A DNA stretch of 64,000 nt, from the IMG/VR virus record IMGVR_UViG_3300030099_004448, positions 1 through 64,000 of that record, one strand, 5' to 3'. The position numbers and the translations under genes were made by a program. The notes under the pieces are model-generated. The model had not been told where the DNA came from, did no database searches, and was given only the letters and a program-made list of their open reading frames with translations. Shown here one piece after another: positions 41,801-64,000 of the stretch; positions within the stretch are counted from its first letter, which is position 1; every line of letters starts with the position of its first letter.

Positions 41801-44800
41801 AGGTTGTTTCCTGTTTCCAAATCTTCTGTAGATATGGTTCACTTGCACAGTCTGGTGGTTATCTCTCAATTACTAACTCCGCAACCAACTTTGGTTTCTA
41901 CTCTCTAAGGGCGACAGGATTCTCTAGAAACTCCTTTATCTTCGATAGAGGTAGAATCGCTGCAACTGGTACTGCAGGTGGTCTACAGACCCTTAAGGCA
42001 GTAGGTTACGGACGTTCTGACATCGATAACTATGTTCTTAGATTCTTCGATGATAGTTTAGTAGATAGAACTAACCTATTCAAACCCACTACAACTCAGA
42101 AGGACTTTAATGCAGCAACTGCGGTCAACACGGTTGCAGAAACTCTCACAATCACCAACCACGGATTTACCAATGGTGATCCTGTTGTTTACAATGGAGA
42201 TGAGGACGCACAACCACAAAGAATTATCGGTGGTCTTGTTAATGATAACCAGTATTATGTTGGTTACATTGATGCAAATACCATTCAACTTTATGAAGAT
42301 GACTCTCTTGCACTTCTAGTTGATCTACAAGATACTGGTGGCGGTGGTATCCATACCCTGACGAAGGCAGCACAAGACTTCTTCGCAACTCAGGTTACCG
42401 ACGCACACAACTCTTATCAGATGTTGACCCTAGCGGGTGTTGGTTCTACTGCAAACTTCCAGTCAGGTAGACTTATTCAACAGACTGTTGCTAGTGGTAC
42501 TGCAATTGGTTACGCTGTAACTTACTACGATTCTAGTAGAGAACTTCTAGTTGGTCTGGAACTATCTGGTGGTATCAGAAGACCATTCGCAGTTTCCGAT
42601 GGTGTTAGTAATTTAACAGTTACCGATCACACCTCACCAAACCCAATTGCAATTGGTATTACTGTTGTTGCGGGACTATCTACTTATTGGACCGTTGAGT
42701 TTAAGGTTGACTCCACCACAACTGGTAACCAGATTCTTAATGTTGCAGATCTACCCGAAGATTATAGACTACACTTCCATAGACCTTCCATCGTTAACTC
42801 TTCTGCACATACCTGGGAATACTCTGGTTCTGGTATTGACTATAACGCTCTACCAGAAAATGGAGGTAAATCCGATCCAAATACTGAGCAGGTCTCTGAA
42901 CTTGGTGGACGAGTTTACTCCTCAGGTACTAACGAACTGGGTGACTTTAAGGTTGGTGATGCAATTACCGCATTCAACAGAACAGGTAATATTATCTTTA
43001 ACAACACCGTTACCATCGGTACATTGGATTCTATCCGACTGTCCCTATCTGGTGGTGCTGTTATTGAAGAGTTCTCCACTGATGTTGGTCTTGGAGACAA
43101 TGAAACTGGTGGTGCTAAGAACACCAGAATTTCAACTCAGTTAGCAATCAGATCGTTCCTCAACAACAGACTTGGTTCTGTTCTTGATAAGACCGTATCA
43201 ACTAACGCAATTCCAAACGCAATTGTTCAGTTGAATGCAATTGGTCAGATCAACGCTGACCTAGTTCCACCAAGATCTGTAAATTACTTCAGATCTGATA
43301 ATGATGGCGGCAGAATTCAACTTGTAAACTTGATTCCTGCAACTAATCTCAATCAGGGTGATACCGTTGTTGAACCAACTGACTCCTTCGTTCTAATCTC
43401 CGACTTGCTCGGACAATACCTGATTCTTGATTCCACTAATGATGCTGGTATTGCACTTACAGATTTCAGTTTCAGTAACGGATTTGAAGTTGTATCTGCG
43501 GTTACTGGTGGTGGTGCAATTGGTCTCGTTACAGGACCTCCAGGAGTTGGTGTTAATACAACCGTTGTAGACCCTGCAATTGGTTATGGCACAACTGGTC
43601 TAGTTAAGGGTGTACCAATTGCAGTTACTAATCTACAAGGTGGTTCTGGATATTCTAACCCAGGCATTTACACTGGCGTAAGACTGGATCAATCTTCTGG
43701 TATTGGTACTGGAACGAGTGCTAAGATTACCATTGGACCTTCTGGTAACGTAACAAACGTTGCTATCCAAACTGGTGGATTTAAATATGCAGTTGGTGAT
43801 ACTCTAACTCTGAATGATCCAAATGTAATTGGTGGTAGAGTTGGTGGATCTAACTTCACAATTGATGTTGGTGAAGTTGAAACAAGACTATATCTTGCAC
43901 TGCAAGAAGGCAGCGCAGGTACTCAGAAGTTCCCTGGTAGTACTGTTCTTCCAGATTACATCGCTGATGAAAGTGCAGTTGGATATTCAACGAACATTGG
44001 TATTGCACTAACTGAGACATTTACTCCAACCGATTATCTTGTCTCTGGTAGCGTTGACTTTGCAAATGATCGCATCATTCTTGGTTCTGGTCACCCATTT
44101 GTTGATGGAGACCCAGTTCTTTACAAAACGAACGGTGGTGTTGTAATTAGTGATCTACTTGATAGTGAAATTTATTACATCAAGACAGTTGGTATTACAT
44201 CAGTTCAACTGTACACTACTTACGCACTCACGACCGTCAAGTCACTTCTCAGTTCTGGTACTGGAACACACTCTCTAAGTAGAGTTGGTGTTACAACTCA
44301 AACTGATCAGATCATATTCAAAAACCACCCATTTACTCAGGGTGATGCCATTAGAATTCAAGTTGGAAGTGCAGCGCCAATTGGTGTTACAACTGGAAAC
44401 TTCTATTACATTGGTTCTACGACAACCAACTCCTTCACACTACATACCACAAGAAATCAAGCACTGGGTTCTGTTAACGGTCTTATCCTTAACACTATTG
44501 ATCTGGACACTGCATACGGAGCAAACGTTGGTGTCGTAACCTTCCAGGAACAAAATGTTGTTTACACCAAGTCTGTAAACACTTCTTCTTCAGACGTTAG
44601 TAACTTCTCTCTACTTTCCTCCAGTTCACTTGATGCTCAGAATATCATTTCTGGTGTATTTGATCCTGCTAGACTGGGTTCTGGAACTGCAAACGCAGAA
44701 GTTGTTCTTTACGGTGATTCTTCCTTTAAGAAGGTTATCAAGTCTGTTGGTATTGGAACAACTCAACCAATTGGTGTAACTTACACCTCTGCAGATCTAG

Positions 44801-46575
44801 CACCTGGTGGTATAGGAATCAACACCTACTATGGTGATATTCAACTGACTCTCAACAGAGTTGTTTCTACTCCAGATGATTATTCTACAGTTGGTATTTC
44901 TAAGTTCAAGTTAAGTACATTTGCAGTCGGAACTGATGGTGAAATAACAATTAGATCTTCTACCAATAGTGGTGATGTTGATGCCGCGACCCTGGGTGGA
45001 CAGAACGGTGCATATTACTTAGATATTAACAACAGTACTGGACAACTTTCTATCGCAAGAGGTGGTACGGGCCTAGGCGCGTTACCAGGTAACGGTAGTA
45101 TGTTGATTGGTAATGGTTCTACTTACACATTGACTGGAGATCCAACGCTTTCTGGAACAATGTCCGCAGGATTTACAGTCCTCGGTGGTAAGGATATTAC
45201 CTTCACTAACTCCTCTTCATTTACTGGAGATTCATCGGGTAGAATTCAACTTTATAACAATTCACTTTACCTCCAGTACAACACTTCAATTATCTTCAGA
45301 GAGTCTACTGGTAGTACCGATGTTGCAAACATCAACAACAGTGGAGATCTAACCTCTATTGGTGACATGCAGTTCCGTAGAGGAACCTTCACCCAGGCAA
45401 CTGGAACCGCACCATTCAGTGTTTCTTCTACCACACTGGTTAATAATCTGAACGCAGACCTACTTGATGGTATTCAGGCATCATCTTTCGTAAGAGCTGA
45501 TGCAAATGATACGGTTGCGAATAACCTGAGTTTCACTTCAGTCACTACTCCAATCACAACGAACTCCATCAAGTTCAATAACTCTGAAATGAGTTCTTCG
45601 TACTATACGGAAGCAGTTGGAGTACTTGCATTTGACGAAAACTTCTATAATGATAGTGCATATGGTTCGGAGGCCACCGCGCCCGCGCAAACCTTCACCA
45701 CAAACGGTGGTGGTCTTGTAATCAAGAACGAAGATGGATGGGGTGCAGTTCTTACCTCACAAAACATTGGCTGGTGCCAAGGCAACTTCGCTAACCTAGA
45801 AATCGGTGGTAACCAGGTATTCCACACTGGAAACGACGGTTCTGGATCTGGTCTTGACGCGGATACCGTTGATGGAATCCAAGGTGCATCATTCCTCAGA
45901 TCTGATGCTGCAGACACTCTAGACGCAGTTATGACTGTTGGTCAAAATGGAAGAATTGACTTCTCAGATATCTCTACCGTACCTGATAATCCTTCAAACC
46001 AACAGGCAGATTACATCAGATTCGGTTCTAACGGATCTATCTCACAGGTTTCTGGTCGTGGAGGTTTGATGATCGCATCATCTGATGATGGTATGGTCAT
46101 TGCAAACGGTGATGTTGGTAGAGGATTTACAGATTCTAATATCAATATAGACATTGAAGATACTTTCATTCTTTCCGACTTCAAGATTGAGTTGTGGACA
46201 AATCTTCAAAATGGATTTGGAAATCAACAAGCGTTTGTCTTTAGAACAGACGGTGAATTTAGAGCTCCTGTAACAGTTCAGGCAAACTCTGATATCAAAC
46301 TCAAGACTAACCTCAGACCTCTTGAAAATTGCCTAGATAAGATCTCGCGCATCACTGGATATCGTTACGAACGTATCGATCTTAACAACAAAGAACAAAT
46401 CGGTGTTGTCGCGCAGGAAGTTGAGAAGGAGTTCCCAGAACTCGTAAGTGAGGAGAAGGGAATTAAGGCAGTATCCTACGGAAACCTCGTTGCCGTCGCG
46501 TTTGAGGCGATCAAGGAACTTAAGGCAGAGGTTGATACCCTCCGCGAAGAGATCCGCGAACTGAAGGGAGAGTAA
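35830..46575 (+). CDS. Giant tail fibre/tailspike (3581 aa): Mtd_N-like N-terminus, pectin-lyase-like beta-helix, C-terminal peptidase S74 intramolecular chaperone
   Basis: QVQLRRGT..EH..FTGA.GELTIDT...VHDG.T.GG at the N-terminus; YYVSAVNGDDTNDG...KSIRRA and I.VEAGNYVE...VVGDNLR; SDIKLKTN...IGVVAQEVEKEFPELV...VSYGNLVAVAFEAIKEL at the C-terminus. Confidence 0.88.
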   Translation: MTKQVQLRRGTAAEHAVFTGAVGELTIDTTNDVAIVHDGVTQGGLPLVGTLAEQKILNKTAIGIGTGSLNEGLYVKGKTDIRGDLFMLPDPTLTYTGIISYFDSQNTITGIATAGVDIGNRFALGPQVHVGSGATIGAGATTSTVTGVGQSTITLSDTFDTGYFATQDGELDGFYDGVDPTTGPEFIVGIDTSGIAASWRVTGPGIQDDTRVFAVGAGQVQIDKLAFNTTAGRTIQAGDTTAGSNIITIDDTGEGIATGMVVTDDINGTANIPANTTITQIINGTNIRISNNAILSTSTDIKMTNRQTFKFGEFSNISFTAYFDSAGIGSIGAGNLQLTKFAKIGEDLEVSGIATIGAGLSVLSGRIFSAGEIFGQSTGQVAGQWTANRLISENDITGVGLTMQNYVVSDRCYFNISDNGIVRMNSGIATSFNTQSLTVTTGIVTSLTAVNLAVEQTGTFGDNVILNNGNLNVNSGFIFGAGDLDIGGQAEIGGDLNVTGFTTVGGGATFTQGIWVSAAATVINNVEIRDGNLTVSSIGFGTVTSYKGHGLSIEPNVNIGGDGGPGILTAKYIVANNTGDIAKTGSTVDYLPFQITGIDTSNIFRGDRVSAAGTVSVYTIKNPAIVTDIGVSKIFVSQPIERTGSITTSFGYLDGGPGISTISGINTTGAVVGYGITFGATAEGTTIAAIGVSAITLSAPATNTRDELFTVTGGSIGLGLTVITGVNTSNVEIGDIVENPIAFTGVPPIVGSIGVGSITVSYGAAAAVSNGSFQISLKRDVYWGPATGITSDFLVTNPNYGRFEGTHLEVERVGTINVTASDITAASGIITSLISTNLNYDVSYGGTAYINSGIVTNLNITNSVIGEVGITTSYTDLSNFDVGIGTVLHVTDVYATNVYANVGVATALDTPLLQVGTANIAAGIITSAGISSAYIDRTEINTGIITAAAIEEVATPLAYINSGIFTDVNVTTQNTNELRFNTGFATNFTVSENINATRITATDTVSLGSSVGIGSVVIDNAFVNTGIFTDIGVSTARFDNLYFNNGIGTYLGLTTGFADGLGIHSVYANTGIFTAVQIQGSNIANSANFERAVIGILTVTQDIFGVDQKNTGVSTFGSATINGVGQTDFHMTGDMRVSGEVKIGIGTTGITIDGDSTDIVGVSTFVANAGIMSSVTISGINTTTGLSRNVTLKTSSSGIATDYTLTLPARLGKVGQVLSLQEDNTIGFNTGGQGLYENRYYVSAVNGDDTNDGKTLPTKSIRRAAQLASFDSFVIPGQRYLDAGDLMENNKDFIVDEVVGKVEFNYENIGLSTIFPDYNQSIWKTYVGDTLDDLIYNIRFGGNNQIRARAVGFGTTTFSTTTEPALYAFEYLRYITQYVVNNQTPPTFYSDPSVTQQSFDFTITQDPENNNANYFNRNKSARLLLSGNRQEIIDKSLASVAIGVTDVPSFYFPGDDGPVTDRSRFYTAYRLIQKNRQEIIDYAWAATVATYPGISSTEVKCKRDLGYFVDAISTDIFCGSNEYARRFMGFYFDANGNPTGNGLLGEETESVFAFTEAAVGMSSAVCNLLAVTDLTAPSDPLTGSNNNASNCANVRSTITTLTGIVTTTVAAGSTSGISTTPNYGYFVVDYETNVRGNVGIATTMVTGGRKCARDLGYIIDAVTMDVSFGSNQHIQRATKFYFDGAGNPKTDGLVAEEAISGYAFTSLAYYAKKAITNQLNFQDFTRPFDPGIGTNKGDLVCANTQASIDNLVGILTTAVLSGSLAGIPTSINFGIADCADVRQSIYNYVGIVTTAVSGIGSIPALDNPQTQSQPVCIFVEAGNYVEDNPIILYDDIAVVGDNLRNTIIRPKNQGKDLFRVRNGMYLTGFAMKDAIDAAGIPQSTWRFAVAFDDPSDTSVSRTGYATKLDKPIISRSPYIQNCSILSFLGGNGILVDGAKVQSPNTPIIKEEVELNADSVQPEQGKSMVAAAFTMVSFGGIGWRVINDGYSQVVSCFQIFCRYGSLAQSGGYLSITNSATNFGFYSLRATGFSRNSFIFDRGRIAATGTAGGLQTLKAVGYGRSDIDNYVLRFFDDSLVDRTNLFKPTTTQKDFNAATAVNTVAETLTITNHGFTNGDPVVYNGDEDAQPQRIIGGLVNDNQYYVGYIDANTIQLYEDDSLALLVDLQDTGGGGIHTLTKAAQDFFATQVTDAHNSYQMLTLAGVGSTANFQSGRLIQQTVASGTAIGYAVTYYDSSRELLVGLELSGGIRRPFAVSDGVSNLTVTDHTSPNPIAIGITVVAGLSTYWTVEFKVDSTTTGNQILNVADLPEDYRLHFHRPSIVNSSAHTWEYSGSGIDYNALPENGGKSDPNTEQVSELGGRVYSSGTNELGDFKVGDAITAFNRTGNIIFNNTVTIGTLDSIRLSLSGGAVIEEFSTDVGLGDNETGGAKNTRISTQLAIRSFLNNRLGSVLDKTVSTNAIPNAIVQLNAIGQINADLVPPRSVNYFRSDNDGGRIQLVNLIPATNLNQGDTVVEPTDSFVLISDLLGQYLILDSTNDAGIALTDFSFSNGFEVVSAVTGGGAIGLVTGPPGVGVNTTVVDPAIGYGTTGLVKGVPIAVTNLQGGSGYSNPGIYTGVRLDQSSGIGTGTSAKITIGPSGNVTNVAIQTGGFKYAVGDTLTLNDPNVIGGRVGGSNFTIDVGEVETRLYLALQEGSAGTQKFPGSTVLPDYIADESAVGYSTNIGIALTETFTPTDYLVSGSVDFANDRIILGSGHPFVDGDPVLYKTNGGVVISDLLDSEIYYIKTVGITSVQLYTTYALTTVKSLLSSGTGTHSLSRVGVTTQTDQIIFKNHPFTQGDAIRIQVGSAAPIGVTTGNFYYIGSTTTNSFTLHTTRNQALGSVNGLILNTIDLDTAYGANVGVVTFQEQNVVYTKSVNTSSSDVSNFSLLSSSSLDAQNIISGVFDPARLGSGTANAEVVLYGDSSFKKVIKSVGIGTTQPIGVTYTSADLAPGGIGINTYYGDIQLTLNRVVSTPDDYSTVGISKFKLSTFAVGTDGEITIRSSTNSGDVDAATLGGQNGAYYLDINNSTGQLSIARGGTGLGALPGNGSMLIGNGSTYTLTGDPTLSGTMSAGFTVLGGKDITFTNSSSFTGDSSGRIQLYNNSLYLQYNTSIIFRESTGSTDVANINNSGDLTSIGDMQFRRGTFTQATGTAPFSVSSTTLVNNLNADLLDGIQASSFVRADANDTVANNLSFTSVTTPITTNSIKFNNSEMSSSYYTEAVGVLAFDENFYNDSAYGSEATAPAQTFTTNGGGLVIKNEDGWGAVLTSQNIGWCQGNFANLEIGGNQVFHTGNDGSGSGLDADTVDGIQGASFLRSDAADTLDAVMTVGQNGRIDFSDISTVPDNPSNQQADYIRFGSNGSISQVSGRGGLMIASSDDGMVIANGDVGRGFTDSNINIDIEDTFILSDFKIELWTNLQNGFGNQQAFVFRTDGEFRAPVTVQANSDIKLKTNLRPLENCLDKISRITGYRYERIDLNNKEQIGVVAQEVEKEFPELVSEEKGIKAVSYGNLVAVAFEAIKELKAEVDTLREEIRELKGE
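39658..41230 (+). repeat. Paralogous helical block shared with gp7 (13890-15375)
   Basis: QYVVNNQTPPT, KC.RDL..I.D, SNQH..R.TKFYFD..GN.KTDGLV.EEA and DCA.VRQS...YVGI occur in the same order in both proteins. Confidence 0.85.
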
Positions 46576-47452: not shown

Positions 47453-49714
47453 ATGTCTCCACTAAATTCTTATTTTCTCCAAGGATCTCCTGGTGAGCAG
47501 AGACTCATTCAGGATTTAGTCAATGAACAGTTAAAAATGTATGGCGAGGACGTACTGTACTTGCCAAGAAAGATCATTGGGGAAAATACTGTTATACGAG
47601 AAAACACTGCTGCAAAGTTTGACGATAGTTTCAGAATCGAAGCATATCTGATGAACTATGAGGGGTTCCAGGGTGCAAGCGCAGAACTCCTCACAAAGTT
47701 TGGCGTTAGAAATACAGATGAATTAACTCTTGTCATATCAAAGGAAAGATATGATGATTTTGTTCAACCAATTATCGATCAGTTCCCAGTTGGAGAAAGA
47801 AAGAAGGCTAAAAGACCTAATGAAGGAGACCTGATCTTTTTCCCTTTAGAGGGAGCACTTTTTGAAATTAAATTTGTAGAAGGAAAAAAACCTTTCTATC
47901 AACTCAGAAATCTATATGTTTATGAACTCTTATGTGAGAGATTTGAATTTGAAGATGAGATTATTGACGTTGCACAAGTAGATAATGAAGGATCTACAGT
48001 CAATGAGACTGTATCTAAGTTTGGTAATGTTCTGACGCTTAATCTTGTAGGAACTGGTGCAACAACTGCGGTAGCTTCTGTTTCAGGAATTGTTACTGAT
48101 ACGACTTACGAGTCTCTACAATACGTAGATCTAATCCATGATGGTGCATATGTAACTACACCCACAGTTAAGATACAAAAACCTTTCTTTGGTATCGGTG
48201 TAACTGCTACAGCTAGTGCAATTCTTAATGTTGATGGTAGTATTGAAACTTTTAATATCACCAATTCAGGAACACAATATATCGGTGTTGCAACAGTTTC
48301 AATTTCCACAACGCCAACAATTCCAAATGAATATGTCCTCGACTATCCTATCAATTCAATTGATAGTGATTACTCTCTCAAGATCGATGATAGGGAGTGG
48401 CAATTAGATACGACTCGTGGAGTAACAACACAAAAATCGGTAGGAACTGTAAAATTCTATTATTACTATGCAGGATCTACTCCAACTAGTGGATATCTGT
48501 ATAGATCAAACTTCGTAAATGTCAAGTGGACTGCGGATAGTACCGTTAGTGTAGAAATAAGAAGAACAGATAATGCACAGTTTGATACAGCAATATTAAA
48601 TGAACCAATATCACTCACTAATGGGTGGAATAGACTTGAGTTTAGTTGGGATGGAACTACCTTCTCCATGTGGAATGATCCTCTAGGAAGCACTAGAGTT
48701 AGACAATTTTATGAAAATCTTTCTGGTACAAATTATGAAAATCAAAAATTTATTGATGATAATGTAGTATCACTTGGATCAACTACTGGTGGTATCCAGT
48801 ACTTTGATCATTTTGAAATATATGATACAGCATCAGTTTATAATGGAGTTGGAGCAACTGAGGGTTCTAGAATTTACTTAGATAGTTTTGAGAAAGGTGA
48901 ACAGGCTACTGCAACTGTAACTGTATCTGCTGGTGGTATTTCTAGTATTACTTTCGATCAGAACGACAGAATTGGTATTGGATATACGATAGCACCAACA
49001 ATAACTTTCTCCAGCCCAGTAAACGGAGCAACTGCAACCGCAGTTGCAATTATGACTTCCAGAACTGTAAATAATAAGAGGGGTATTGACCGAGTACTTA
49101 TAACAAATCCTGGTTACGGTTATACGGAATCGCCAACTATTGAATTTATTAGTTCAAACGGGTCTGGTGGTATTGCTACTGCAGTTATGAATACAGGAGT
49201 TCTGCCAGTTGTTGCGATTAGTAGTGGTGGTGTAGGTTATACTACCGATCCACAAGTATTCATTGAACCAATATTTGTTGCAGAATCTGTTGGGGTTGGT
49301 TCTGAAATCAATAATGCAAAGGCGGAAGTAGTTCGCAATACAAACGGAGAAGTATCTCAGATTCTTTATTCTAACGCTGGGGCAGGTTATACATTTACTC
49401 CAAGCATTACCTTTACTTCTCCAACGTCGGATACTTATGGTTATTATGAATACAATGAAGTAGTTACTGGTCAGCGTTCTGGAGCTACTGGATATGTAAG
49501 AGAATGGGATGCTGATGACCGCATTCTAAAGTTAGCTACTGTCAATGGAACATTCCAAAGAGGAGAATCTGTCGTAGGAGCTGCAGGAAGTTATAAAGTA
49601 TCTACTGTTGATTCAAATGAATTCTTAGATGCATTTGCAGATAATATAGATATTGAATCAGAAGCTGACGAAATTATTGACTTTAGTCAAACCAATCCCT
49701 TTGGAGAATTCTAA
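47453..49714 (+). CDS. gp14: Neck protein gp14, enlarged by insertions (753 aa)
   Basis: EQRLIQDLVNEQLKMYG.DV.YLPR, RPNEGDLIFFPL...FEIKFVE..KPFYQL and C-terminal DFSQTNPFGEF. Confidence 0.92.
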   Translation: MSPLNSYFLQGSPGEQRLIQDLVNEQLKMYGEDVLYLPRKIIGENTVIRENTAAKFDDSFRIEAYLMNYEGFQGASAELLTKFGVRNTDELTLVISKERYDDFVQPIIDQFPVGERKKAKRPNEGDLIFFPLEGALFEIKFVEGKKPFYQLRNLYVYELLCERFEFEDEIIDVAQVDNEGSTVNETVSKFGNVLTLNLVGTGATTAVASVSGIVTDTTYESLQYVDLIHDGAYVTTPTVKIQKPFFGIGVTATASAILNVDGSIETFNITNSGTQYIGVATVSISTTPTIPNEYVLDYPINSIDSDYSLKIDDREWQLDTTRGVTTQKSVGTVKFYYYYAGSTPTSGYLYRSNFVNVKWTADSTVSVEIRRTDNAQFDTAILNEPISLTNGWNRLEFSWDGTTFSMWNDPLGSTRVRQFYENLSGTNYENQKFIDDNVVSLGSTTGGIQYFDHFEIYDTASVYNGVGATEGSRIYLDSFEKGEQATATVTVSAGGISSITFDQNDRIGIGYTIAPTITFSSPVNGATATAVAIMTSRTVNNKRGIDRVLITNPGYGYTESPTIEFISSNGSGGIATAVMNTGVLPVVAISSGGVGYTTDPQVFIEPIFVAESVGVGSEINNAKAEVVRNTNGEVSQILYSNAGAGYTFTPSITFTSPTSDTYGYYEYNEVVTGQRSGATGYVREWDADDRILKLATVNGTFQRGESVVGAAGSYKVSTVDSNEFLDAFADNIDIESEADEIIDFSQTNPFGEF

Positions 49715-50769: not shown

Positions 50770-51194
50770 AGTACGATGAAATAGATGATGCTTTGGATAT
50801 TACACCCACAGAGGTTAAGTCTGAAAAAATTATCAAGAAAGAACCAGAGGTAACTGAAGTCGTTACTTCCACTCAAGAACAACTCAAAAAAGATTATGAA
50901 TATACTCGGGGTAATCTTTACTCCTTGATTGAAAAAGGCCAAGAAGCGGTTGATGGGATCCTAGAACTTGCACAAGAATCAGATTCTCCCAGAGCATTTG
51001 AGGTTGCGGGACAACTTATCAAACATGTTGGTGATGTTGCTGATAAGTTGGTAGATCTTCAGAAAAAAGTAAAAGACATCGAAAAGGACGATGGAAAATC
51101 ATCTAAAGCAACAAACGTTACAAACAATGCGGTTTTCTTTGGCTCTACAGCGGATCTCCAAAAATTTCTCAAAAATAATGGAGATTCTAAATAG
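50766..51194 (+). CDS. gp16: Terminase small subunit gp16
   Basis: DYEYTRGNLYSLIEKGQEA..GILELAQE..SPRAFEVAGQLIK and NNAVFFGST..LQKFLK. Confidence 0.93.
   Translation: MKYDEIDDALDITPTEVKSEKIIKKEPEVTEVVTSTQEQLKKDYEYTRGNLYSLIEKGQEAVDGILELAQESDSPRAFEVAGQLIKHVGDVADKLVDLQKKVKDIEKDDGKSSKATNVTNNAVFFGSTADLQKFLKNNGDSK
51187..51193 (+). promoter_or_regulatory. T4-type late promoter (CTAAATA)
   Basis: Overlaps the gp16 stop, upstream of ORF 51217. Confidence 0.65.
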
Positions 51195-51216: not shown

Positions 51217-53430
51217 ATGACCAAAGCTAAATCTTGTCCCCCAGGGAAGTACTGGTGTTATACTGATAAAAAATGTAAAAAAATTCCCATGGGATTTTAT
51301 GTGGGTCGTGGCGGTTATTTGTCAAGAGAAGATGAGAATGGTGAAGATGGTAAAAAGAACGGTAAGAAAAATGGTGGTGTTTCTAACGGCAATGGTAATG
51401 GGAATGGTGGTAATGGGAATGGGGGTGGTTCTTCTGGATCCAACGGGGGCAACGGCGGAGGAGGAATGAGTGAGGAATCAAATCCTCGTATTCCAAGAAA
51501 GAAGGGACAACCTGCGAATTCTAAGAAACACTCGGATTTATATACAGACGAAAATCCCAAGGGTACAATTCATGGACTTGGATTCAAAGATGTTGAAACT
51601 GCTAAAGCATCTGTATCTAAAATTCGCAATTCATCAAGATCTCATGCTCACAAAATCCAGGCAGCAGTTGCTATGGAACAGAGAGCAAGAGAAATGGGCA
51701 AAACTTCGGAAGCAGCAGTCTATCGAAAGTATATCAATTCCATGAAAAAGAAGACTAAAAAAATGAACGAAGAAATCATCACTGAAAAACGTGATGGTAA
51801 ATCTGCCAAGGACAAGGGTTATTCTCTCCGCGACTGGTTCAAAGGTGGTGGTTGGAAACAAACTGGTGGTAAATATGATGGTAAACCCTGTGCGAAACAA
51901 CCAGGTCAAAAAACTAAACCATTTTGTCGTGATGCAGATGATCGTGCTGCAATGAGTAAAGACGAAAGAAATAGAAGAGCCGCTAAAAAGCGCAGAGAAG
52001 ACCCAAATCCCGATAGAAAAGGAAAGGCAAAAATGGTAACCGATTCATACGATTTTTCAAACTGGAGAGACGAGTTCAAAGCACTCGAATTTGAAACTGT
52101 TGATATTATTGGCACAGAACCACTGAAACCAACTGAAGGTCTCGGAAGTGAGATGATTGAGGCAAAGGATAATTGCGGTTGTGGGAAAAATCCTTGCGAA
52201 ACCTATGGTGAGGGTGAACAAATTCCTAAAAATGTAAAGAAAATTGCTAAAGAATTAGACAAGGCAGTTGCCATGCATAAGGATCAAGCAAAAAGATTAA
52301 GAGCAGCAGGTATTTCTGAAGAAAATATTGATGAAAAATGTTGGAAAGGTTATGAAAAGAAAGGTATGAAGACCATGTTTGGTAAGAGATATCCAAACTG
52401 TGTCAAGAAAGAAGAAACAGAAGTCACAAAAGAGGGTGTCCTTGATGCCGCTCTGGAGACTGATAAGAAAATGGGTGAACTTCATAAGAAAGTTGACAAT
52501 GATGTCAAACGAATGAAGAAGGGTAAGAAGTTCAAAGAAGAATTAGAAGGCAACTTGAAAGAGATGTCTTCAGAAAAAGATATTAATAAAAAACTTCAGA
52601 AGAAGGTAAACTCTAAAGATCTAAATCCTTCAGAATATATTAAAAATACAAGACTGATGCCTGGTTCTGGTATTATTAAAAAATTACCAGAAGGAAATGC
52701 TGGACCAAGTACTCCCGTAAAACAATATGATGGTAAGTTTATGCCTAACCCAGGTGCTGGTAGACCTGGTAAGGTTAGGCTAAAACCAGGAACTCCTGCA
52801 GCATTAAGACTTGCTCATAAAGAGTATTCTGATTGGAGAACTGAACTCTTTGAAGGCGATGGTGATCATGAATACGAAATGGCCCGTCGTCAATTAGCAA
52901 CCATTAAAAATGCAGTTTCTCGTCTTGAGAAAAAGATGGGTGAAACTGGAGAGGGTGAACTCAAAGCATGGGTTCAGTCAAAGTTAACAAGATCTGCAGA
53001 TGACATCGATACAGTTGCAGATTATATGACTAACGAGGAGAATATCCAGGAAGGGGAAAAAGACGCTTGTTACCACAAAGTCAAGTCTCGTTATTCCGTA
53101 TGGCCTTCTGCATACGCATCTGGTGCATTAGTCAAGTGTCGTAAAGTCGGTGCAAAAAATTGGGGCAATAAGACTAAGAAAGAAGAAATTCAGTATATGA
53201 ACACTGAAGACTATCAAAGGATACAGGAATATGGTAACGTTTACACTATAATAGTGTTATGGAGAGGTAAGTCCCATCGCTTGCAACTTTTCTTCCAGGG
53301 TACGGCAAGACCTTCCCGAGATGAAGTTAAGAACGAAGTAGAAAAGATTTACCCAGGTGGAATGGTGAGTTACTACTTCCCCAGCGCCACCGATCCAGGT
53401 AAACCAATTATTGTTTCTACAAGGAGTTGA
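51217..53430 (+). CDS. Modular hypothetical protein (737 aa), possible head-internal polyprotein
   Basis: String of short modules (CPPGKYWC, HSDLYTDENPKG, LRDWFKGGGW, KCWKGY...YPNCVK, DHEYEMAR.QL, ACYHKVKSRY.VWPSAYASGALVKCRK) separated by K/E-rich linkers; late promoter upstream. Confidence 0.8.
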   Translation: MTKAKSCPPGKYWCYTDKKCKKIPMGFYVGRGGYLSREDENGEDGKKNGKKNGGVSNGNGNGNGGNGNGGGSSGSNGGNGGGGMSEESNPRIPRKKGQPANSKKHSDLYTDENPKGTIHGLGFKDVETAKASVSKIRNSSRSHAHKIQAAVAMEQRAREMGKTSEAAVYRKYINSMKKKTKKMNEEIITEKRDGKSAKDKGYSLRDWFKGGGWKQTGGKYDGKPCAKQPGQKTKPFCRDADDRAAMSKDERNRRAAKKRREDPNPDRKGKAKMVTDSYDFSNWRDEFKALEFETVDIIGTEPLKPTEGLGSEMIEAKDNCGCGKNPCETYGEGEQIPKNVKKIAKELDKAVAMHKDQAKRLRAAGISEENIDEKCWKGYEKKGMKTMFGKRYPNCVKKEETEVTKEGVLDAALETDKKMGELHKKVDNDVKRMKKGKKFKEELEGNLKEMSSEKDINKKLQKKVNSKDLNPSEYIKNTRLMPGSGIIKKLPEGNAGPSTPVKQYDGKFMPNPGAGRPGKVRLKPGTPAALRLAHKEYSDWRTELFEGDGDHEYEMARRQLATIKNAVSRLEKKMGETGEGELKAWVQSKLTRSADDIDTVADYMTNEENIQEGEKDACYHKVKSRYSVWPSAYASGALVKCRKVGAKNWGNKTKKEEIQYMNTEDYQRIQEYGNVYTIIVLWRGKSHRLQLFFQGTARPSRDEVKNEVEKIYPGGMVSYYFPSATDPGKPIIVSTRS

Positions 53431-53432
53431 TC

Positions 53433-53600
53433 ATGCAAGACGACATCGAACTTTCAAACTTGACCAAAGCACTTGAGTACGAACGTCAATCTAGAGAGAT
53501 TGATAAGATGACTCTAACTGAAGCGAGAGAGTTCGCAAAGTCTTATTTAAAACTCTACTTTAAACAACAGGAAGTAATAGGTTCTATAGCAAACATGTGA
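53433..53600 (+). CDS. NblA-like small helical protein (55 aa); absent from ORF track
   Basis: Hand translation: MQDDIELSNLTKALEYERQSREIDKMTLTEAREFAKSYLKLYFKQQEVIGSIANM*. AAGGAG RBS at 53421-53426. Ungapped by-eye alignment to NblA. The ORF itself is well supported; the functional call is less certain. Confidence 0.6.
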   Translation: MQDDIELSNLTKALEYERQSREIDKMTLTEAREFAKSYLKLYFKQQEVIGSIANM

Positions 53601-53604
53601 TTTT

Positions 53605-55251
53605 ATGAGTGACGTATATCTTGGTAATCCTAATCTAAAAAAAGCGAATACACCAATTGAATTCACGGAAGAACAAATCCGTGAATTCATGAAGTGTAAA
53701 GAAGATCCTGTTTATTTCGCGAACAATTATATCAAGATTGTTTCACTAGACGAAGGTTTAACACAATTCCATCCATATCATTTCCAAGAGAAACTGATTA
53801 ATCGATTTCATGAGAATCGATTTAATATCTGTAAGATGCCACGACAGACAGGTAAGTCTACCACCGTGGTGTCTTATCTTTTACACTACGCAGTTTTCAA
53901 CGATAGTGTCAACATTGGTATTCTTGCAAACAAAGCGGCAACCGCAAGAGAACTTCTAGGAAGGTTACAAACTGCATACGAGAACTTACCTAAATGGATG
54001 CAACAGGGTATTATAGCCTGGAACAAAGGATCAATGGAGTTGGAAAATGGGAGTAAGATATTGGCAGCTTCTACGTCTGCGAGTGCTGTCCGAGGTATGT
54101 CATTCAACGTCCTCTTTCTCGACGAGTTCGCGTTCGTCCCAAATCACGTCGCTGATGACTTCTTTGCCTCTGTTTATCCTACTATTACTTCTGGTAAAAA
54201 CACCAAAGTAATCATTGTATCTACCCCGCACGGTATGAATCACTTCTACCGTATGTGGCATGATGCGGAAAAGAGTAAGAACGATTATATTCCAACTGAT
54301 GTTCACTGGTCTGAAGTCCCTGGTAGGGATTTGGAATGGAAAGAACAAACAATTAAGAACACATCTGAACAACAATTCAAAATCGAGTTTGAGTGCGAGT
54401 TCTTAGGATCTATTGATACTTTGATTACCGCAGCGAAATTAAAGTCTCTTGTTTATGATGATCCAATCAAAAGAAATGCAGGATTGGATATCTATGAAGA
54501 ACCAAAAGAAGATCACACATATGTTGTTACCGTTGACGTTGCAAGAGGTGTAGAAAAAGACTACTCTGCATTTTGTGTATGCGACACAACGTCATTTCCC
54601 TATAAGTTAGTTGCTAAGTATAGAAATAATACGATTAAACCAATTCTGTTTCCAAATATTATTAGAGATGTATCGAAGGCATACAATCAAGCATTTATAT
54701 TGGTAGAAGTTAATGACATTGGAGACCAAGTAGCATCGATCATTCACATGGACTTAGAGTATGACAACATACTCATGTGTTCCATGAGAGGTCGTGCGGG
54801 TCAAGTAGTTGGTCAAGGATTTTCTGGTAAGAAGACACAATTAGGTGTCAAGATGTCCAAAACCGTAAAGAAGATTGGATCTCTAAATCTAAAAGCGCTG
54901 ATTGAGGACGATAAGTTACTAGTATCTGATCTAGATGTAATTAGTGAGTTAACAACGTTTATCCAAAAATCAGGATCATTCGAGGCAGAAGAAGGTTGTA
55001 ATGATGATCTTGCAATGTGTCTTGTCATCTTTGCTTGGTTAGTTCAACAGGACTACTTTAAAGAAATGACGGACAACGATGTTCGTAAAAAAATATATGA
55101 AGACCAAAGAGATCAGATCGAAGCTGATATGGCACCATTTGGATTTATCAGTGATGGTTTAGATGACGAAGGAGTCATTATAGAAAATGATGGAACAATG
55201 TGGAAGACAGATGAATATGGTGACATGTCATATATGTGGGAATATCACTGA
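53605..55251 (+). CDS. gp17: Terminase large subunit gp17
   Basis: YLGNPNLK, Walker A PRQTGKS, Walker B VLFLDEFAF, STPHG.NHFY, nuclease VTVDVARG and DDLAM motifs. Confidence 0.98.
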   Translation: MSDVYLGNPNLKKANTPIEFTEEQIREFMKCKEDPVYFANNYIKIVSLDEGLTQFHPYHFQEKLINRFHENRFNICKMPRQTGKSTTVVSYLLHYAVFNDSVNIGILANKAATARELLGRLQTAYENLPKWMQQGIIAWNKGSMELENGSKILAASTSASAVRGMSFNVLFLDEFAFVPNHVADDFFASVYPTITSGKNTKVIIVSTPHGMNHFYRMWHDAEKSKNDYIPTDVHWSEVPGRDLEWKEQTIKNTSEQQFKIEFECEFLGSIDTLITAAKLKSLVYDDPIKRNAGLDIYEEPKEDHTYVVTVDVARGVEKDYSAFCVCDTTSFPYKLVAKYRNNTIKPILFPNIIRDVSKAYNQAFILVEVNDIGDQVASIIHMDLEYDNILMCSMRGRAGQVVGQGFSGKKTQLGVKMSKTVKKIGSLNLKALIEDDKLLVSDLDVISELTTFIQKSGSFEAEEGCNDDLAMCLVIFAWLVQQDYFKEMTDNDVRKKIYEDQRDQIEADMAPFGFISDGLDDEGVIIENDGTMWKTDEYGDMSYMWEYH

Positions 55252-55478
55252 TGACTTTTGAAGAGTCATTTGAATTAGAACACTTATTTCTAGAAGAAAG
55301 AAAGTGTAGATCTTGTGGTCAGATAAAAAATTTATTGAATGATTTTTACTTAACAAGAAAAGATCGAGGCACTTTACCATCTGCATATTCTTATGAATGT
55401 AAAGAATGTACGGTAAAAAGAATTAAAACATCACGATCTAAAAATAAACAAGTTTATTGGGAGTATCCTGATTGGTAG
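55251..55478 (+). CDS. Small zinc-ribbon protein (75 aa; CRSC...CKEC)
   Basis: ATG at 55251 overlaps the gp17 stop (TGATG). Two CxxC pairs and C-terminal YPDW. Confidence 0.8.
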   Translation: MTFEESFELEHLFLEERKCRSCGQIKNLLNDFYLTRKDRGTLPSAYSYECKECTVKRIKTSRSKNKQVYWEYPDW

Positions 55479-60364: not shown

Positions 60365-60391
60365 ATTTGAGTTACTTATTATTTTAAGAAC

Positions 60392-60637
60392 ATGGATGAC
60401 GTAGTTGATATGATTGCTCAAGGTGCTTCGGCATCTGAAGTTAGTGATCGTTTGAAAGACATTTTGATGCAGAAGTCTGCTGCAAACATTGATGAAGTAA
60501 GACCACAAGTCGCTGCTTCAATGTTCGGTGCAACTCAAGCAGAAGTCGAAGCTGACGCCGAAGAAGAGGAAACTCCAGAAGCTTCTGCAGAAACAGAGAC
60601 TGAAGAAGAACCAACTCCAGAAGAGGAAACTGACTAA
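60392..60637 (+). CDS. Small acidic protein, probable gp67-like prohead core protein
   Basis: Directly after gp20, with an E-rich C-terminus like T4 prohead core peptides. Assignment is positional. Confidence 0.65.
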   Translation: MDDVVDMIAQGASASEVSDRLKDILMQKSAANIDEVRPQVAASMFGATQAEVEADAEEEETPEASAETETEEEPTPEEETD

Positions 60638-61650: not shown

Positions 61651-62862
61651 ATGTCCAGTGGTAACGATTTACAAGAAATGGAAGTAGGCACAACTCAATC
61701 CAAAACCGCTGTTAATGCTAAAGCGGCTCCCGCTGCAGCACCTGAAACCAGTGCAACTCCTGTTGCGACCCCTGGACAGGCAGCATCTTACGAGGATCTG
61801 GGTGGACCAACTCCAGAAAACAGCAAGCCAGATGACGGCAGCAATATGCTGAAGACACCTGGTGCTACGCTGAAGCAGGTCAAAGATGTAGTAAACAAGG
61901 GTGCAGCCCCTGCTGATGCAGCAGATAGTTCTGCAACTCCAGTTTCTACCCCAGGTCAAGGCGGTAAAATGGAAGAGGTTGAAGCCGAAGGCGAAGTCGT
62001 CGCTGAAGAAGAGACTGCTGAAGAAGCAGTTGTTTCTGAAGAGGAGGCAACCGAAACCACCGACGAGACTGAAGTCGTAGCTGAGTCCGAGGAGACCACC
62101 GAAGAAGAAATTCTTACTGGTGAAGAACTCGATTCTGCAATTGAAGAAGATGTTAACGCACTTCTTTCTGGCGACGAGTCACTTTCCGAGGAGTTCAGAG
62201 AAAAGGCAAAACTAGTTTTTGAAGCTGCTCTGGGCGCCAAAGCCAAGGAAATCTCTGCAGAACTCGAAGAGCAGTATGCTACTGCACTTTCTGAGGAAGT
62301 TGCTGAAATCAAAGTAGAACTAACCGAGCGTGTAGATTCATACCTTGAGTATGTTTCTGCTGAGTGGTTAGAAGAAAATGCTCTATCTATCGAAAATGGT
62401 CTCAAGTCTGAGATCACGGAATCCTTCATTACTGGTATGAAGGGTCTCTTTGAAGAACATTATGTATCGATGCCTGAAGAAAAATATGATGTACTAGAGA
62501 GCATGGTACAGAAATTAGATGAAATGGAGACAAAACTCAACGAACAGATTGAGAAGAATATTTCTCTCAATAAGCAGCTTGGTGAATCCACAGCTGAATC
62601 TGTTTTCAACAGAGTTTGCGAAGGTCTTGCTGTTTCCCAAAAGGATAAGCTTCAGTCCCTCGTAGAGAATGTTGAGTTTGAGAGTGAAAATGACTATTAC
62701 CAGAAGCTGGTAACTCTTAGGGAGTCATACTTCCCAAGAAACGCTGGTACTCCAGCAAACGAAACGGAAGAAACACTAACCGAGGAAGCGGCACCAACGG
62801 AAGAATTATCTTCTACTATGGACGCTTATGTTCGCGCTCTTTCCACCGTTGCTAAAAAGTGA
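61651..62862 (+). CDS. gp22: Prohead core scaffolding protein gp22
   Basis: LSEEFREKAKLVFEAAL, L.ERVDSYLEYV..EW..EN, ITESF..GMK.LFEEHY and KL.TLRESYF; acidic coiled coil between gp21 and gp23. Confidence 0.95.
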   Translation: MSSGNDLQEMEVGTTQSKTAVNAKAAPAAAPETSATPVATPGQAASYEDLGGPTPENSKPDDGSNMLKTPGATLKQVKDVVNKGAAPADAADSSATPVSTPGQGGKMEEVEAEGEVVAEEETAEEAVVSEEEATETTDETEVVAESEETTEEEILTGEELDSAIEEDVNALLSGDESLSEEFREKAKLVFEAALGAKAKEISAELEEQYATALSEEVAEIKVELTERVDSYLEYVSAEWLEENALSIENGLKSEITESFITGMKGLFEEHYVSMPEEKYDVLESMVQKLDEMETKLNEQIEKNISLNKQLGESTAESVFNRVCEGLAVSQKDKLQSLVENVEFESENDYYQKLVTLRESYFPRNAGTPANETEETLTEEAAPTEELSSTMDAYVRALSTVAKK

Positions 62863-62920: not shown

Positions 62921-64000
62921 ATGGACGGACAAAACCTACAACAATTACAGGAGAAGTGGGCTCCTATCCTTAATCACGAAAATTTCAGTGATATTGCCGA
63001 TTCCCACAAGAGAGGAGTTGTTGCACAGCTCCTAGAGAACCAAGAGAAAGAGTCTCAAGAGACCGCTTCCTTCCTTGGAGAAGCTGCACCAACTAACTCA
63101 GGTCATGCACCTGCAGGTTCTAACGTTGCTGGCTTCGATCCCGTTCTGATCTCCTTGATCAGACGCTCCATGCCTAACCTGATCGCATACGACATCTGCG
63201 GCGTTCAGCCAATGAGTGGTCCTACTGGACTTATCTTCGCAATGCGTTCCCGTCAGTCCGCTCAGGACGGAACCGAGACCTTCTTCGATGAAGTCGATTC
63301 CGCATTCTCTGGTCAGGACAACGACAGTTCCCTCACTGGTGGTTTCTCTGATGCCGCTGCTGGTATGGGTACTGATGCACAAGCAGGTACTAACCCAAGT
63401 GCGCTGAACCCAGTTGGTTCTGCAAACTCCCTCGGTTACACCGTTGGTCAGGGTATGTCCACCGCTGAGGCTGAAGCTCTCGGAGACGGTGCGAACAACC
63501 ACTTCAACCAGATGGCATTCTCTATCGAGAAAGTCACTGTAACCGCTAAGTCCAGAGCACTCAAAGCTGAGTACTCCTTGGAACTCGCACAAGACCTCAA
63601 GGCGATTCACGGTCTGAACGCTGAGGCTGAGTTGGCAAACATCCTGTCAACTGAGATCCTCGCTGAAATCAACCGCGAAGTCATCAGAACTATCTACAAG
63701 GTTGCTGAACAGGGTGCAACTGCAAACGTTGCAACCGCAGGTACTTTCGACCTCGACGTTGACTCCAACGGTCGTTGGTCTGTTGAGAAGTTCAAGGGTC
63801 TTCTGTTCCAAATCGAGCGCGATGCCAACGCAATCGCACAAAGAACTCGTAGAGGAAAGGGCAACACCATCATCTGCTCCGCAGACGTTGCTTCCGCTCT
63901 AACCATGGCTGGTGTACTCGATTACACCCCTGCACTCAACGCTAACCTTAACGTTGATGACACTGGTAACACCTTCGCTGGTGTTCTCCAAGGTAAGTAT
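62921..64000 (+). CDS. gp23: Major capsid protein gp23 (5' part; runs off the window, so absent from ORF track)
   Basis: Hand translation from ATG 62921: MDGQNLQQLQEKWAPILNH...FLGEAAPTNS...AGFDPVLISLIRRSMPNLIAYDICGVQPMSGPTGLIFAMRS...FSIEKVTVTAKSRALKAEYSLELAQDLKAIHGLNAE. Confidence 0.99.
   Translation, partial: MDGQNLQQLQEKWAPILNHENFSDIADSHKRGVVAQLLENQEKESQETASFLGEAAPTNSGHAPAGSNVAGFDPVLISLIRRSMPNLIAYDICGVQPMSGPTGLIFAMRSRQSAQDGTETFFDEVDSAFSGQDNDSSLTGGFSDAAAGMGTDAQAGTNPSALNPVGSANSLGYTVGQGMSTAEAEALGDGANNHFNQMAFSIEKVTVTAKSRALKAEYSLELAQDLKAIHGLNAEAELANILSTEILAEINREVIRTIYKVAEQGATANVATAGTFDLDVDSNGRWSVEKFKGLLFQIERDANAIAQRTRRGKGNTIICSADVASALTMAGVLDYTPALNANLNVDDTGNTFAGVLQGKY

Follow-up and report, generated by a model that had tools for sequence, protein, structure and literature searches.

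A modular protein encoded between the terminase genes of a T4-like cyanomyovirus is a candidate substrate for prohead-protease processing

T4-like cyanophages are among the most abundant marine viruses. The DNA analyzed here, referred to as the window, comprises the first 64,000 nucleotides of IMG/VR virus record IMGVR_UViG_3300030099_004448, a record of 238,937 bp with the gene order of a T4-like cyanomyovirus. Our subject is an open reading frame (ORF) of the window, at 51217..53430, whose product of 737 residues is built from small modules that recur across a large family of relatives. At the junctions between these modules a hydrophobic-x-Glu motif is strongly and specifically enriched, and we consider it probable that the ORF encodes a polyprotein of small basic internal head proteins that is processed by the prohead protease gp21.

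A basic, modular protein encoded between gp16 and gp17

The window carries, in order, gp13, gp14, gp15, gp16, the 737-residue ORF, gp17, gp18, gp19, gp20, a gp67-like acidic ORF, gp21, gp22 and gp23. The ORF is thus flanked by the genes for the small terminase gp16 (PF11053) and the large terminase gp17 (Terminase_6N/6C), a placement shared by the related genes of phages Bellamy, S-SM2, S-SM1 and Syn9; the isolates nearest to the window are Synechococcus phages S-SCSM2R, Bellamy, S-SM2 and S-SKS1. The protein has a mass of 82 kDa, an isoelectric point (pI) of 9.5, a net charge of +43, 14.5% Lys and 12 Cys residues. The ORF and the parts of it described below all lie on the + strand, as do the sites in gp22 and gp23 and the gp21 gene. 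A late-promoter-like octamer, TCTAAATA, is found at 51186..51193 on the same strand, 31 nt upstream of the ATG. The identical TCTAAATA variant precedes gp18 at a distance of 45 nt, and NATAAATA-type octamers stand 30-51 nt upstream of gp13, gp20, gp21, gp22 and the gp67-like ORF. Because the octamer is placed as it is before gp13, gp20, gp21 and gp22, late expression of the 737-residue ORF is plausible.

On sequence and position, the protein is a member of the T4-GC119 / phrog_727 family. phrog_727 matches it in 3 stretches (E 8.5e-68), with several other PHROGs of unknown function matching piecewise, and tblastn matches include S-SM1_115 and the orthologue S-SM2_109, which is labelled T4-LIKE GC 119. 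GC119 occurs in 15 of 16 cyanophage genomes at lengths of 276-2985 nt, being absent from S-PM2 (Sullivan et al. 2010, PMC3037559), and was found in purified S-SM1 virions by 13 peptides (PMC3037559, Table S8). Earlier work describes it only as hypothetical or structural, and as belonging to a mobile cassette. In the searchable literature, with most subscription journals outside our reach, we found no description of the modular make-up of GC119, of its junction motif or of a link to gp21, and no earlier description of cyanophage capsid-targeting sequences or internal proteins.

Pfam holds no family for the 737-residue protein, its pieces giving only weak sub-threshold matches (for example DUF5872, E 0.012), and a feature search of the ESM Atlas yielded nothing but viral clusters without names. 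AlphaFold2 was run on residues 1-300 and 286-737, each with a half-protein alignment of homologous fragments, and the models show confident islands at approximately residues 7-37, 126-189, 204-261, 338-363, 379-397, 405-450, 551-605, 617-644 and 674-722, with low-confidence stretches between them at 41-86, 273-334, 460-539, 608-613 and 654-667. The two halves have no sequence similarity to each other (best E 0.69). Since there are about ten confident islands and the halves are dissimilar, the original prediction of unrelated modules arranged as beads on a string is a fair description, and the models point to a protein of about ten unrelated mini-domains of 3-14 kDa.

Bead 1 (residues 5-37; 51229..51327) is modeled as a small beta module with three Cys (CPPGKYWCYTDKKC) at a predicted local distance difference test score (pLDDT) of ~93, and opens more family proteins than any other module (47 of 151 representatives). 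A Gly/Asn-rich linker predicted to be disordered (residues 41-83; pLDDT <50) and the site MSE|E (84-86) follow at 51337..51474, with a homology breakpoint at 83|84; a short imperfect tandem DNA repeat (51391-51426, period 6/15) encodes Gly/Asn-rich linker sequence here, and its length varies among near-identical relatives. Bead 2 (residues 87-182; 51475..51762), a helical 'SNPRIPRKK...' module with a pI of 10.2, has [ILMV]xE upstream in 91% of its distinct contexts across the family, is missing as a clean cassette from the relatives L004, L007 and L008, and begins MSNPRIP in its free-standing versions. After it comes a double site, MNE|E-IITE|K (residues 183-190; 51763..51786), with homology breakpoints at 185/186, and KKMNE is found behind the SNPRIP module in nearly all contexts seen, regardless of the next module. 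Here that module is bead 3 (residues 191-279; 51787..52053), of the form 'RDGKSAKD...LRDWF...C...C' (pLDDT ~85; breakpoint at 279); all 24 distinct contexts upstream of the RDGKS module have [ILMV]xE, and in Roseobacter phage CRP-7 a homologue of bead 3 has an 80-aa gene of its own.

A WRDEF segment and a disordered stretch (residues 280-315; 52054..52161) run to the site MIE|A (313-315), a motif that contains one end of a cassette indel. Bead 4 (residues 316-365; 52162..52311) joins a CGCGxxPC motif to an ELDKAV helix (338-363, pLDDT 77-87), and the whole segment is missing from L004, L007 and L008. The double site ISE|E-NIDE|K (residues 366-373; 52312..52335), in a low-confidence linker, separates it from bead 5 (residues 374-400; 52336..52416), modeled as a 'KCWKGYEKKG...NCVKK' beta hairpin with two Cys (pLDDT 90-92); the KCW module has [ILMV]xE upstream in 84% of 102 distinct contexts, or 97% with Phe allowed. 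A long predicted helix, conserved in close relatives only, extends from residue 401 to LKE|M at 447-449 (residues 401-449; 52417..52563), and on the model the MGE in its middle (419-421) is unlikely to be accessible to a protease.

Residues 450-546 (52564..52854) are predicted to be disordered (pLDDT <50) and hold the sites LPE|G (490-492) and LFE|G (544-546), the latter within a 'SDWRTELFE' motif and with a breakpoint at 545/546. They lead into an acidic helical hairpin, 'DHEYEMARRQL...KAWVQSK' (residues 547-609; 52855..53043; pI 4.7, pLDDT ~90, phrog_32745), and 78% of the contexts upstream of this DHE module carry [ILMV]xE. Site IQE|G (residues 610-612; 53044..53052) sits in the low-confidence linker 608-613, and 18 high-scoring segment pairs begin at residue 613. 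The helical bead 'KDACYHKVKSRYSVWPSAYASGALVKCRK' (residues 613-656; 53053..53184), with two Cys, matches phrog_38880 and gave the weak DUF5872 match mentioned above; the motif is upstream of it in 86-91% of contexts, and it is a separate 47-aa gene in CRP-7. A last linker (residues 657-671; 53185..53229; pLDDT <50 at 654-667) runs to IQE|Y (669-671), and the C-terminal bead (residues 672-737; 53230..53427; phrog_10346) is modeled as a beta-beta-alpha-beta domain at a pLDDT of 93-96. This last domain also shows a non-significant fold likeness to two RNA-polymerase-binding proteins, YkzG (E 0.2, template modeling (TM) score by target 0.53-0.57) and T7 Gp2 (E 2, TM 0.60). Assuming the predicted cuts, the fragments would be of 5-14 kDa, and 9 of the 10 larger ones would have a pI of 8.9-10.2.

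The hydrophobic-x-Glu motif and module exchange

All ten tripeptides named in the original prediction exist in the ORF (MSE, MNE at 183-185, ITE at 188-190, MIE, ISE at 366-368, IDE at 371-373, LKE, LPE, LFE and the IQE at 610-612), and we found three further [ILM]xE sites, namely the mid-helix MGE, a second MGE at 574-576 and the IQE at 669-671. These 13 sites (8 [IL]xE and 5 MxE) compare with 7.0 +/- 2.4 in shuffled sequences (p 0.017), and the strict T4 motif [IL]xE with 5.0 (p 0.12). The excess (z 2.6) ranks 11th among 155 ORFs of the genome, with gp21 (z 3.1) and gp22 (z 2.8) just above. Approximately 8 of the 13 sites lie in unstructured stretches of the AlphaFold2 models, which make up 48% of the protein, and most are in low-confidence linkers or at helix ends.

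The family offers a far larger sample. An exhaustive HMMER search returned 5,359 representatives of 50%-identity clusters at E<=1e-3 and 632 at E<=1e-30, and none of 373 phage records covers at least 80% of the 737-residue protein. Small modules are shared among 80 IMG/VR loci and 150 representatives but stand in differing orders and combinations, so that module content and order are shuffled among family members. To inspect the junctions, we took the first conserved residues of 12 module types as anchors and searched the nine positions preceding them. Of 470 distinct upstream contexts, 384 carry [ILMV]-x-E (82%; 87% with Phe) vs 11.4% at random positions inside these proteins, and the motif persists whichever modules flank the junction. 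There is no enrichment of Asp ([ILMV]-x-D in 5.1% of contexts, background 5.0%), a selectivity that fits the finding in T4 that Asp at P1, the position of the Glu, blocks processing (PMC9026906). The enrichment of the motif at module borders that the original prediction anticipated is therefore clear and Glu-specific at the level of the family and modest in the single protein, where the strict T4 form does not stand out from shuffled sequence.

At P3, the hydrophobic position, Met is found in 111 junctions (40%), Ile in 70 (25%), Val in 50 (18%), Leu in 37 (13%) and Phe in 13 (5%); P2 is mostly Asn, Lys, Ser or Asp, and the residue after the Glu is mostly Glu, Gly, Ala or Lys. Relative to shuffled sequences, [ILM]xE is 1.56-fold and MxE 1.87-fold enriched family-wide, with [ILM]xD at 0.96-fold. 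Tandem double sites such as MNE-EIITE and MKE-ETQLNE number 162 vs 36 +/- 5 in shuffles, a 4.5-fold excess that recalls the built-in redundancy described for the propeptides of phiKZ. BLAST breakpoints in comparisons of family members fall within 5 residues of a site for 39% of ends and 60% of starts, vs 18% at random, and the homology breakpoints of the query cluster at 83|84, 185|186, 279, 545|546, 612|613 and 656-675, four of which coincide with sites listed above.

Module gain and loss, also expected by the original prediction, can be seen directly among close relatives. Whole modules are cleanly present or absent among four contigs whose shared columns are 92-96% identical, the differing cassettes being the 99-aa SNPRIP unit, the CGCG-plus-helix unit, a 14-aa CPVCGNDPCQC insert, a 67-aa insert and one swapped module, and the ends of these indels lie within or beside hydrophobic-x-Glu motifs. 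An outgroup is provided by the 58-kb Roseobacter phage CRP-7, in which modules of the forms DACYxK, xWF...C...C and CARSAGQ...RWxC are three consecutive separate genes of 47-84 aa (gp65, gp64 and gp63; L085:2748-3394), small and basic, directly upstream of the large terminase gene. Because they are separate genes in CRP-7, the modules can work as separate polypeptides. None of the three contains the junction motif, and CRP-7 gave no Peptidase_S77 match in the same search that recovers gp21 in the genome of the window. In this comparison, which has a single outgroup, the linker motif thus seems to appear where modules are fused in phages with gp21.

The prohead protease, its substrates and capsid-targeting leaders

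The proposed processing enzyme would be the product of the intact gp21 gene in the same genome (60945..61595; Peptidase_S77, Pfam E 3.5e-33; phrog_207), which has GELGHP and GVSSRG motifs as in the gp21 proteins of KVP40 and phage 25. In T4, gp21 and gp22 are both gp21 substrates, and the documented cleavage motif is L/I-x-E. As the original prediction had noted, matching signatures are present in the head proteins of the window: gp23 has a predicted maturation site SFLGE|AAPT (LGE, residues 52-54; 63074..63082), and gp22, a very acidic protein with a net charge of -62, has TLTE|EAAPT near its C terminus (LTE, residues 376-378; 62776..62784). The gp22 proteins of five other cyanophages have L-x-E at the equivalent place, and the equivalent gp23 sites are IAE in S-SM2, LNE in Bellamy, LTE in S-SM1 and Syn9, and LSE in S-B68.

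The T4 capsid-targeting sequence is MKTYQEFIAE (PMC8442874), in which targeting depends on positions 4 and 7 and processing on positions 8 and 10 (PMC9026906). Leaders in the same register occur in family members (MKTFADFINE|S, MKTFSQFLLE|A and MKSLNKFIQE|G); behind MKSLNKFIQE|G stands the Cys module with which the 737-residue protein also begins, and relatives with a T4-type leader include P0108, P0116 and P0134. Among 1,308 internal Met positions of the proteome, not one fits the strict leader pattern. Such leaders are present also in ORFs directly upstream of GC119, namely S-SM2_108 (L003:2582-3010; MKTLKQFLKE|T) and Bellamy_122 (L001:2846-3001; MKSFKQFQE|S), and small ORFs in the same position at L015/L016/L019:2598-2846 have the leader MKTFKIFLEIAE. 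These small leader-bearing ORFs continue with a family module or a Gly/Asn-rich tract, and may represent either cargo genes in their own right or detached heads of the array.

Elsewhere in the same genome, outside the window at G000:100511-101926 (L088:1212-2624), a cytidylyltransferase-like protein (PF01467) starts MKSFSQFLKE|A, in exact register with the T4 sequence; N-termini read from GenBank records show this leader to be conserved in S-SM2, Bellamy, Syn9 and S-SM1. The annotation and position of the protein suggest that it is T4-GC190, which was detected in S-SM1 virions by 25 peptides (PMC3037559). A second locus at G000:101974-105002 (L088:2675-5703) encodes Lys-rich proteins with modules common to the GC119 family: a 675-aa Lys-rich protein that starts MKSWNSFSKELTE|K and has the DUF3008 module common to the family, and a 205-aa protein with a DUF6321 module and the end ...RRRWNC.

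Several neighboring genes merit a brief description. Between gp20 and gp21, at the position of T4 gp67, lies a small, very acidic ORF (60391-60630; MDDVVDMIAQG...EEETD) with TATAAATA 34 nt upstream, and another small ORF (MSYIRHDENNNEDSS...) follows it, to ~60910. A 57-aa ORF (53427-53600; phrog_27081, E 4.7e-16) overlaps the stop codon of the 737-residue ORF and precedes gp17, and an 80-aa ORF with CxxC...CxxC motifs (55236-55478) lies between gp17 and gp18, where related phages have ORFs that are annotated as endonuclease VII or contain PF09723. The gp14 neck protein (47453-49714) has 753 residues, with the T4_neck-protein domain confined to residues 14-175; its long C-terminal extension matches the 'virion structural protein' PHROGs 701 and 19630 at residues 481-604. 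Upstream of the neck genes, three giant ORFs on the + strand (6302-20935, 4877 aa; 22579-30087, 2502 aa; 35830-46575, 3581 aa) presumably encode structural or fibre proteins.

Processing of the polyprotein, competing explanations and significance

We favor, with some confidence, the interpretation that the 737-residue ORF, as a member of the catalogued but uncharacterized T4-GC119 family, represents a modular variant of the T4 internal-protein system. In such a scheme the precursor would be expressed late and, being strongly basic, would probably enter the prohead core, perhaps drawn in by the acidic charge of gp22. A gp21-type serine protease would then cut after the Glu of the hydrophobic-x-Glu motifs in the flexible linkers, releasing mostly basic mini-proteins, often with Cys pairs, that would stay with the packaged DNA like the T4 internal proteins and might serve in DNA charge neutralization or as injected effectors. 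Cleavage, head location and injection of the products are all steps that we infer.

A number of observations weigh against this interpretation. The 737-residue protein has no targeting leader (its N-terminus is MTKAKSCPPGKYWC, and an in-frame stop 21 nt upstream of the ATG bars an extension), and the S-SM1 homologue detected in virions likewise has none. Head entry must therefore use another route, for which charge pairing with the acidic gp22 is our guess. Met and Val together occupy P3 at ~58% of junctions, and neither belongs to the motif documented for T4; because the gp23 and gp22 sites of six cyanophages have only Leu or Ile at P3, acceptance of Met or Val has to be supposed for the enzyme. 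Enrichment of the motif within the 737-residue protein alone is modest, and the family counts come from related sequences and are not fully independent, though the contexts are distinct. The S-SM1 proteomics attests to presence in the virion and says nothing on cleavage, and Syn9 carries the gene (gp114) with the protein undetected in its virion study (PMC3037559). In some phages, family members lie away from the head genes. A weak point, finally, is that Foldseek, run with both AlphaFold2 models against PDB and AFDB clusters, yielded no fold match of significance. Those predictions that sequence alone can check all came out in favor of the original idea, and the processed polyprotein that it proposed is partly supported: the junction motif, the shuffling of modules, the virion link of the family and the intact gp21 speak for it, and the missing leader and the Met and Val at P3 do not.

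The strongest of the competing explanations, one we regard as unlikely, is that the protein is an unprocessed multi-domain virion protein in which hydrophobic-x-Glu is a structural or recombinational feature of linkers, such as a helix cap or a stretch of microhomology for cassette exchange. The MNE/ITE, LKE and MGE sites do lie at the ends of predicted helices, indel ends fall inside motifs as expected of recombination joints, and the T4 motif does not include Met or Val at P3. However, the motif varies in DNA, with four or five residues at P3, many codons and any residue at P2, which argues that it is selected at the protein level. It is also strictly Glu and not Asp, with the excess of redundant tandem sites described above; the modules stand free and without the motif in CRP-7, a phage with no gp21-type match; and the family has targeting leaders that end in the same motif.

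We find it improbable that the precursor is cut by gp21 into products that act in assembly only, as scaffold-core or size-determining components like T4 gp22, gp67 and gp68, and are then expelled or left inert with no delivery of effectors. T4 core proteins are indeed cut by gp21 into several fragments, the gene lies within the structural module, and a basic precursor could pair with the acidic gp22. Against this stand the extreme variability of the family in content and length (276-2985 nt among 16 cyanophages) and its absence from S-PM2, both of which fit an accessory role better than a core assembly role; moreover, the modules are confidently predicted as folded mini-domains, not as scaffold-like coiled coils.

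That the modules are DNA-packaging accessory proteins, working with the terminase in the cytoplasm and not cargo of the head, we judge highly doubtful. The gene does have the small terminase gene on one side and the large one on the other, a terminase gene is found in the retrieved flank of 35 of 80 related loci, the CRP-7 versions are immediately upstream of the large terminase gene, and the products are very basic, but the S-SM1 homologue was found in purified virions, the family has capsid-targeting-like leaders, and in other phages the gene is placed elsewhere. Least credible, to the point that we give it almost no weight, is the idea that M-x-E represents relic or working start codons of fused small genes, with products made by internal translation starts: two fission variants (L079 MKEGSLHKWF and L054 MNERHIK) start at the motif Met and some free-standing proteins start MNE, MSE or MTE, but the requirement for Glu without enrichment of Asp finds no explanation there. 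As a general account of the junctions, a start-codon origin was rejected, since 60% of junction P3 residues are Ile, Val, Leu or Phe, with 0 of 37 Leu encoded by TTG and 3 of 50 Val by GTG.

Returning to the reading of a gp21-processed array of internal head proteins, its closest parallel is the set of T4 proteins IPI, IPII, IPIII and Alt, with which it shares a basic character, hydrophobic-x-Glu sites and a gp21 homologue in the genome. Relatives and neighboring genes have the corresponding leader, with an aromatic residue at position 4, Phe at 7, Ile or Leu at 8 and Glu at 10, and the repertoire is hypervariable, as it is for T-even internal proteins. Unlike the T4 internal proteins, which are single small proteins cut once after the leader, the cyanophage protein would be an array of about ten modules with a site at every junction; the 737-residue member is also leaderless, has no detected Pfam family and belongs to a family with Met and Val common at P3. 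A single precursor with several sites is familiar from T4 gp22, gp67 and gp68, which gp21 cuts at L/I-x-E into small pieces, and gp22 and gp21 of this genome show a motif excess like that of the 737-residue ORF. Those T4 proteins are conserved acidic scaffold components, whereas the protein described here is basic, made of predicted folded mini-domains, hypervariable and, given its absence from S-PM2, dispensable. In the phiKZ-like giant phages phiKZ, 201phi2-1 and SPN3US, a gp21-related protease likewise cuts many inner-body and ejection proteins of the head after Glu at redundant multiple sites, but there the motif is S/A-x-E, the substrates are separate large gene products in place of strings of shuffled mini-domains, and no sequence relationship exists.

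A bolder extension, offered as a speculation that we think less likely to be right than wrong, is that cyanophages maintain a combinatorial library of mini-proteins, in which a few dozen modules make up thousands of sequence clusters, loaded into the head as a polyprotein, cut by gp21 and injected with the DNA as a first wave of effectors. Host defenses or host transcription are conceivable, if tentative, examples of their targets. On that view the T4 capsid-targeting decapeptide would be an ancient address label, conserved from coliphages to cyanophages, which would also load enzymes such as the cytidylyltransferase-like protein.

If the favored interpretation is correct, the 'hypothetical structural protein' of most marine cyanomyoviruses would be a defined, protease-released cargo array, whose content could be read from sequence, since both the cut sites and the products can be predicted. 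The same interpretation would account for the hypervariable region between gp16 and gp17, carry the T4 paradigm of internal proteins and capsid targeting over to cyanophages, and point to a natural means of loading proteins of choice into the heads of these phages. The dozens of small folds encoded by the family would then be candidates for roles in DNA condensation or early host takeover.

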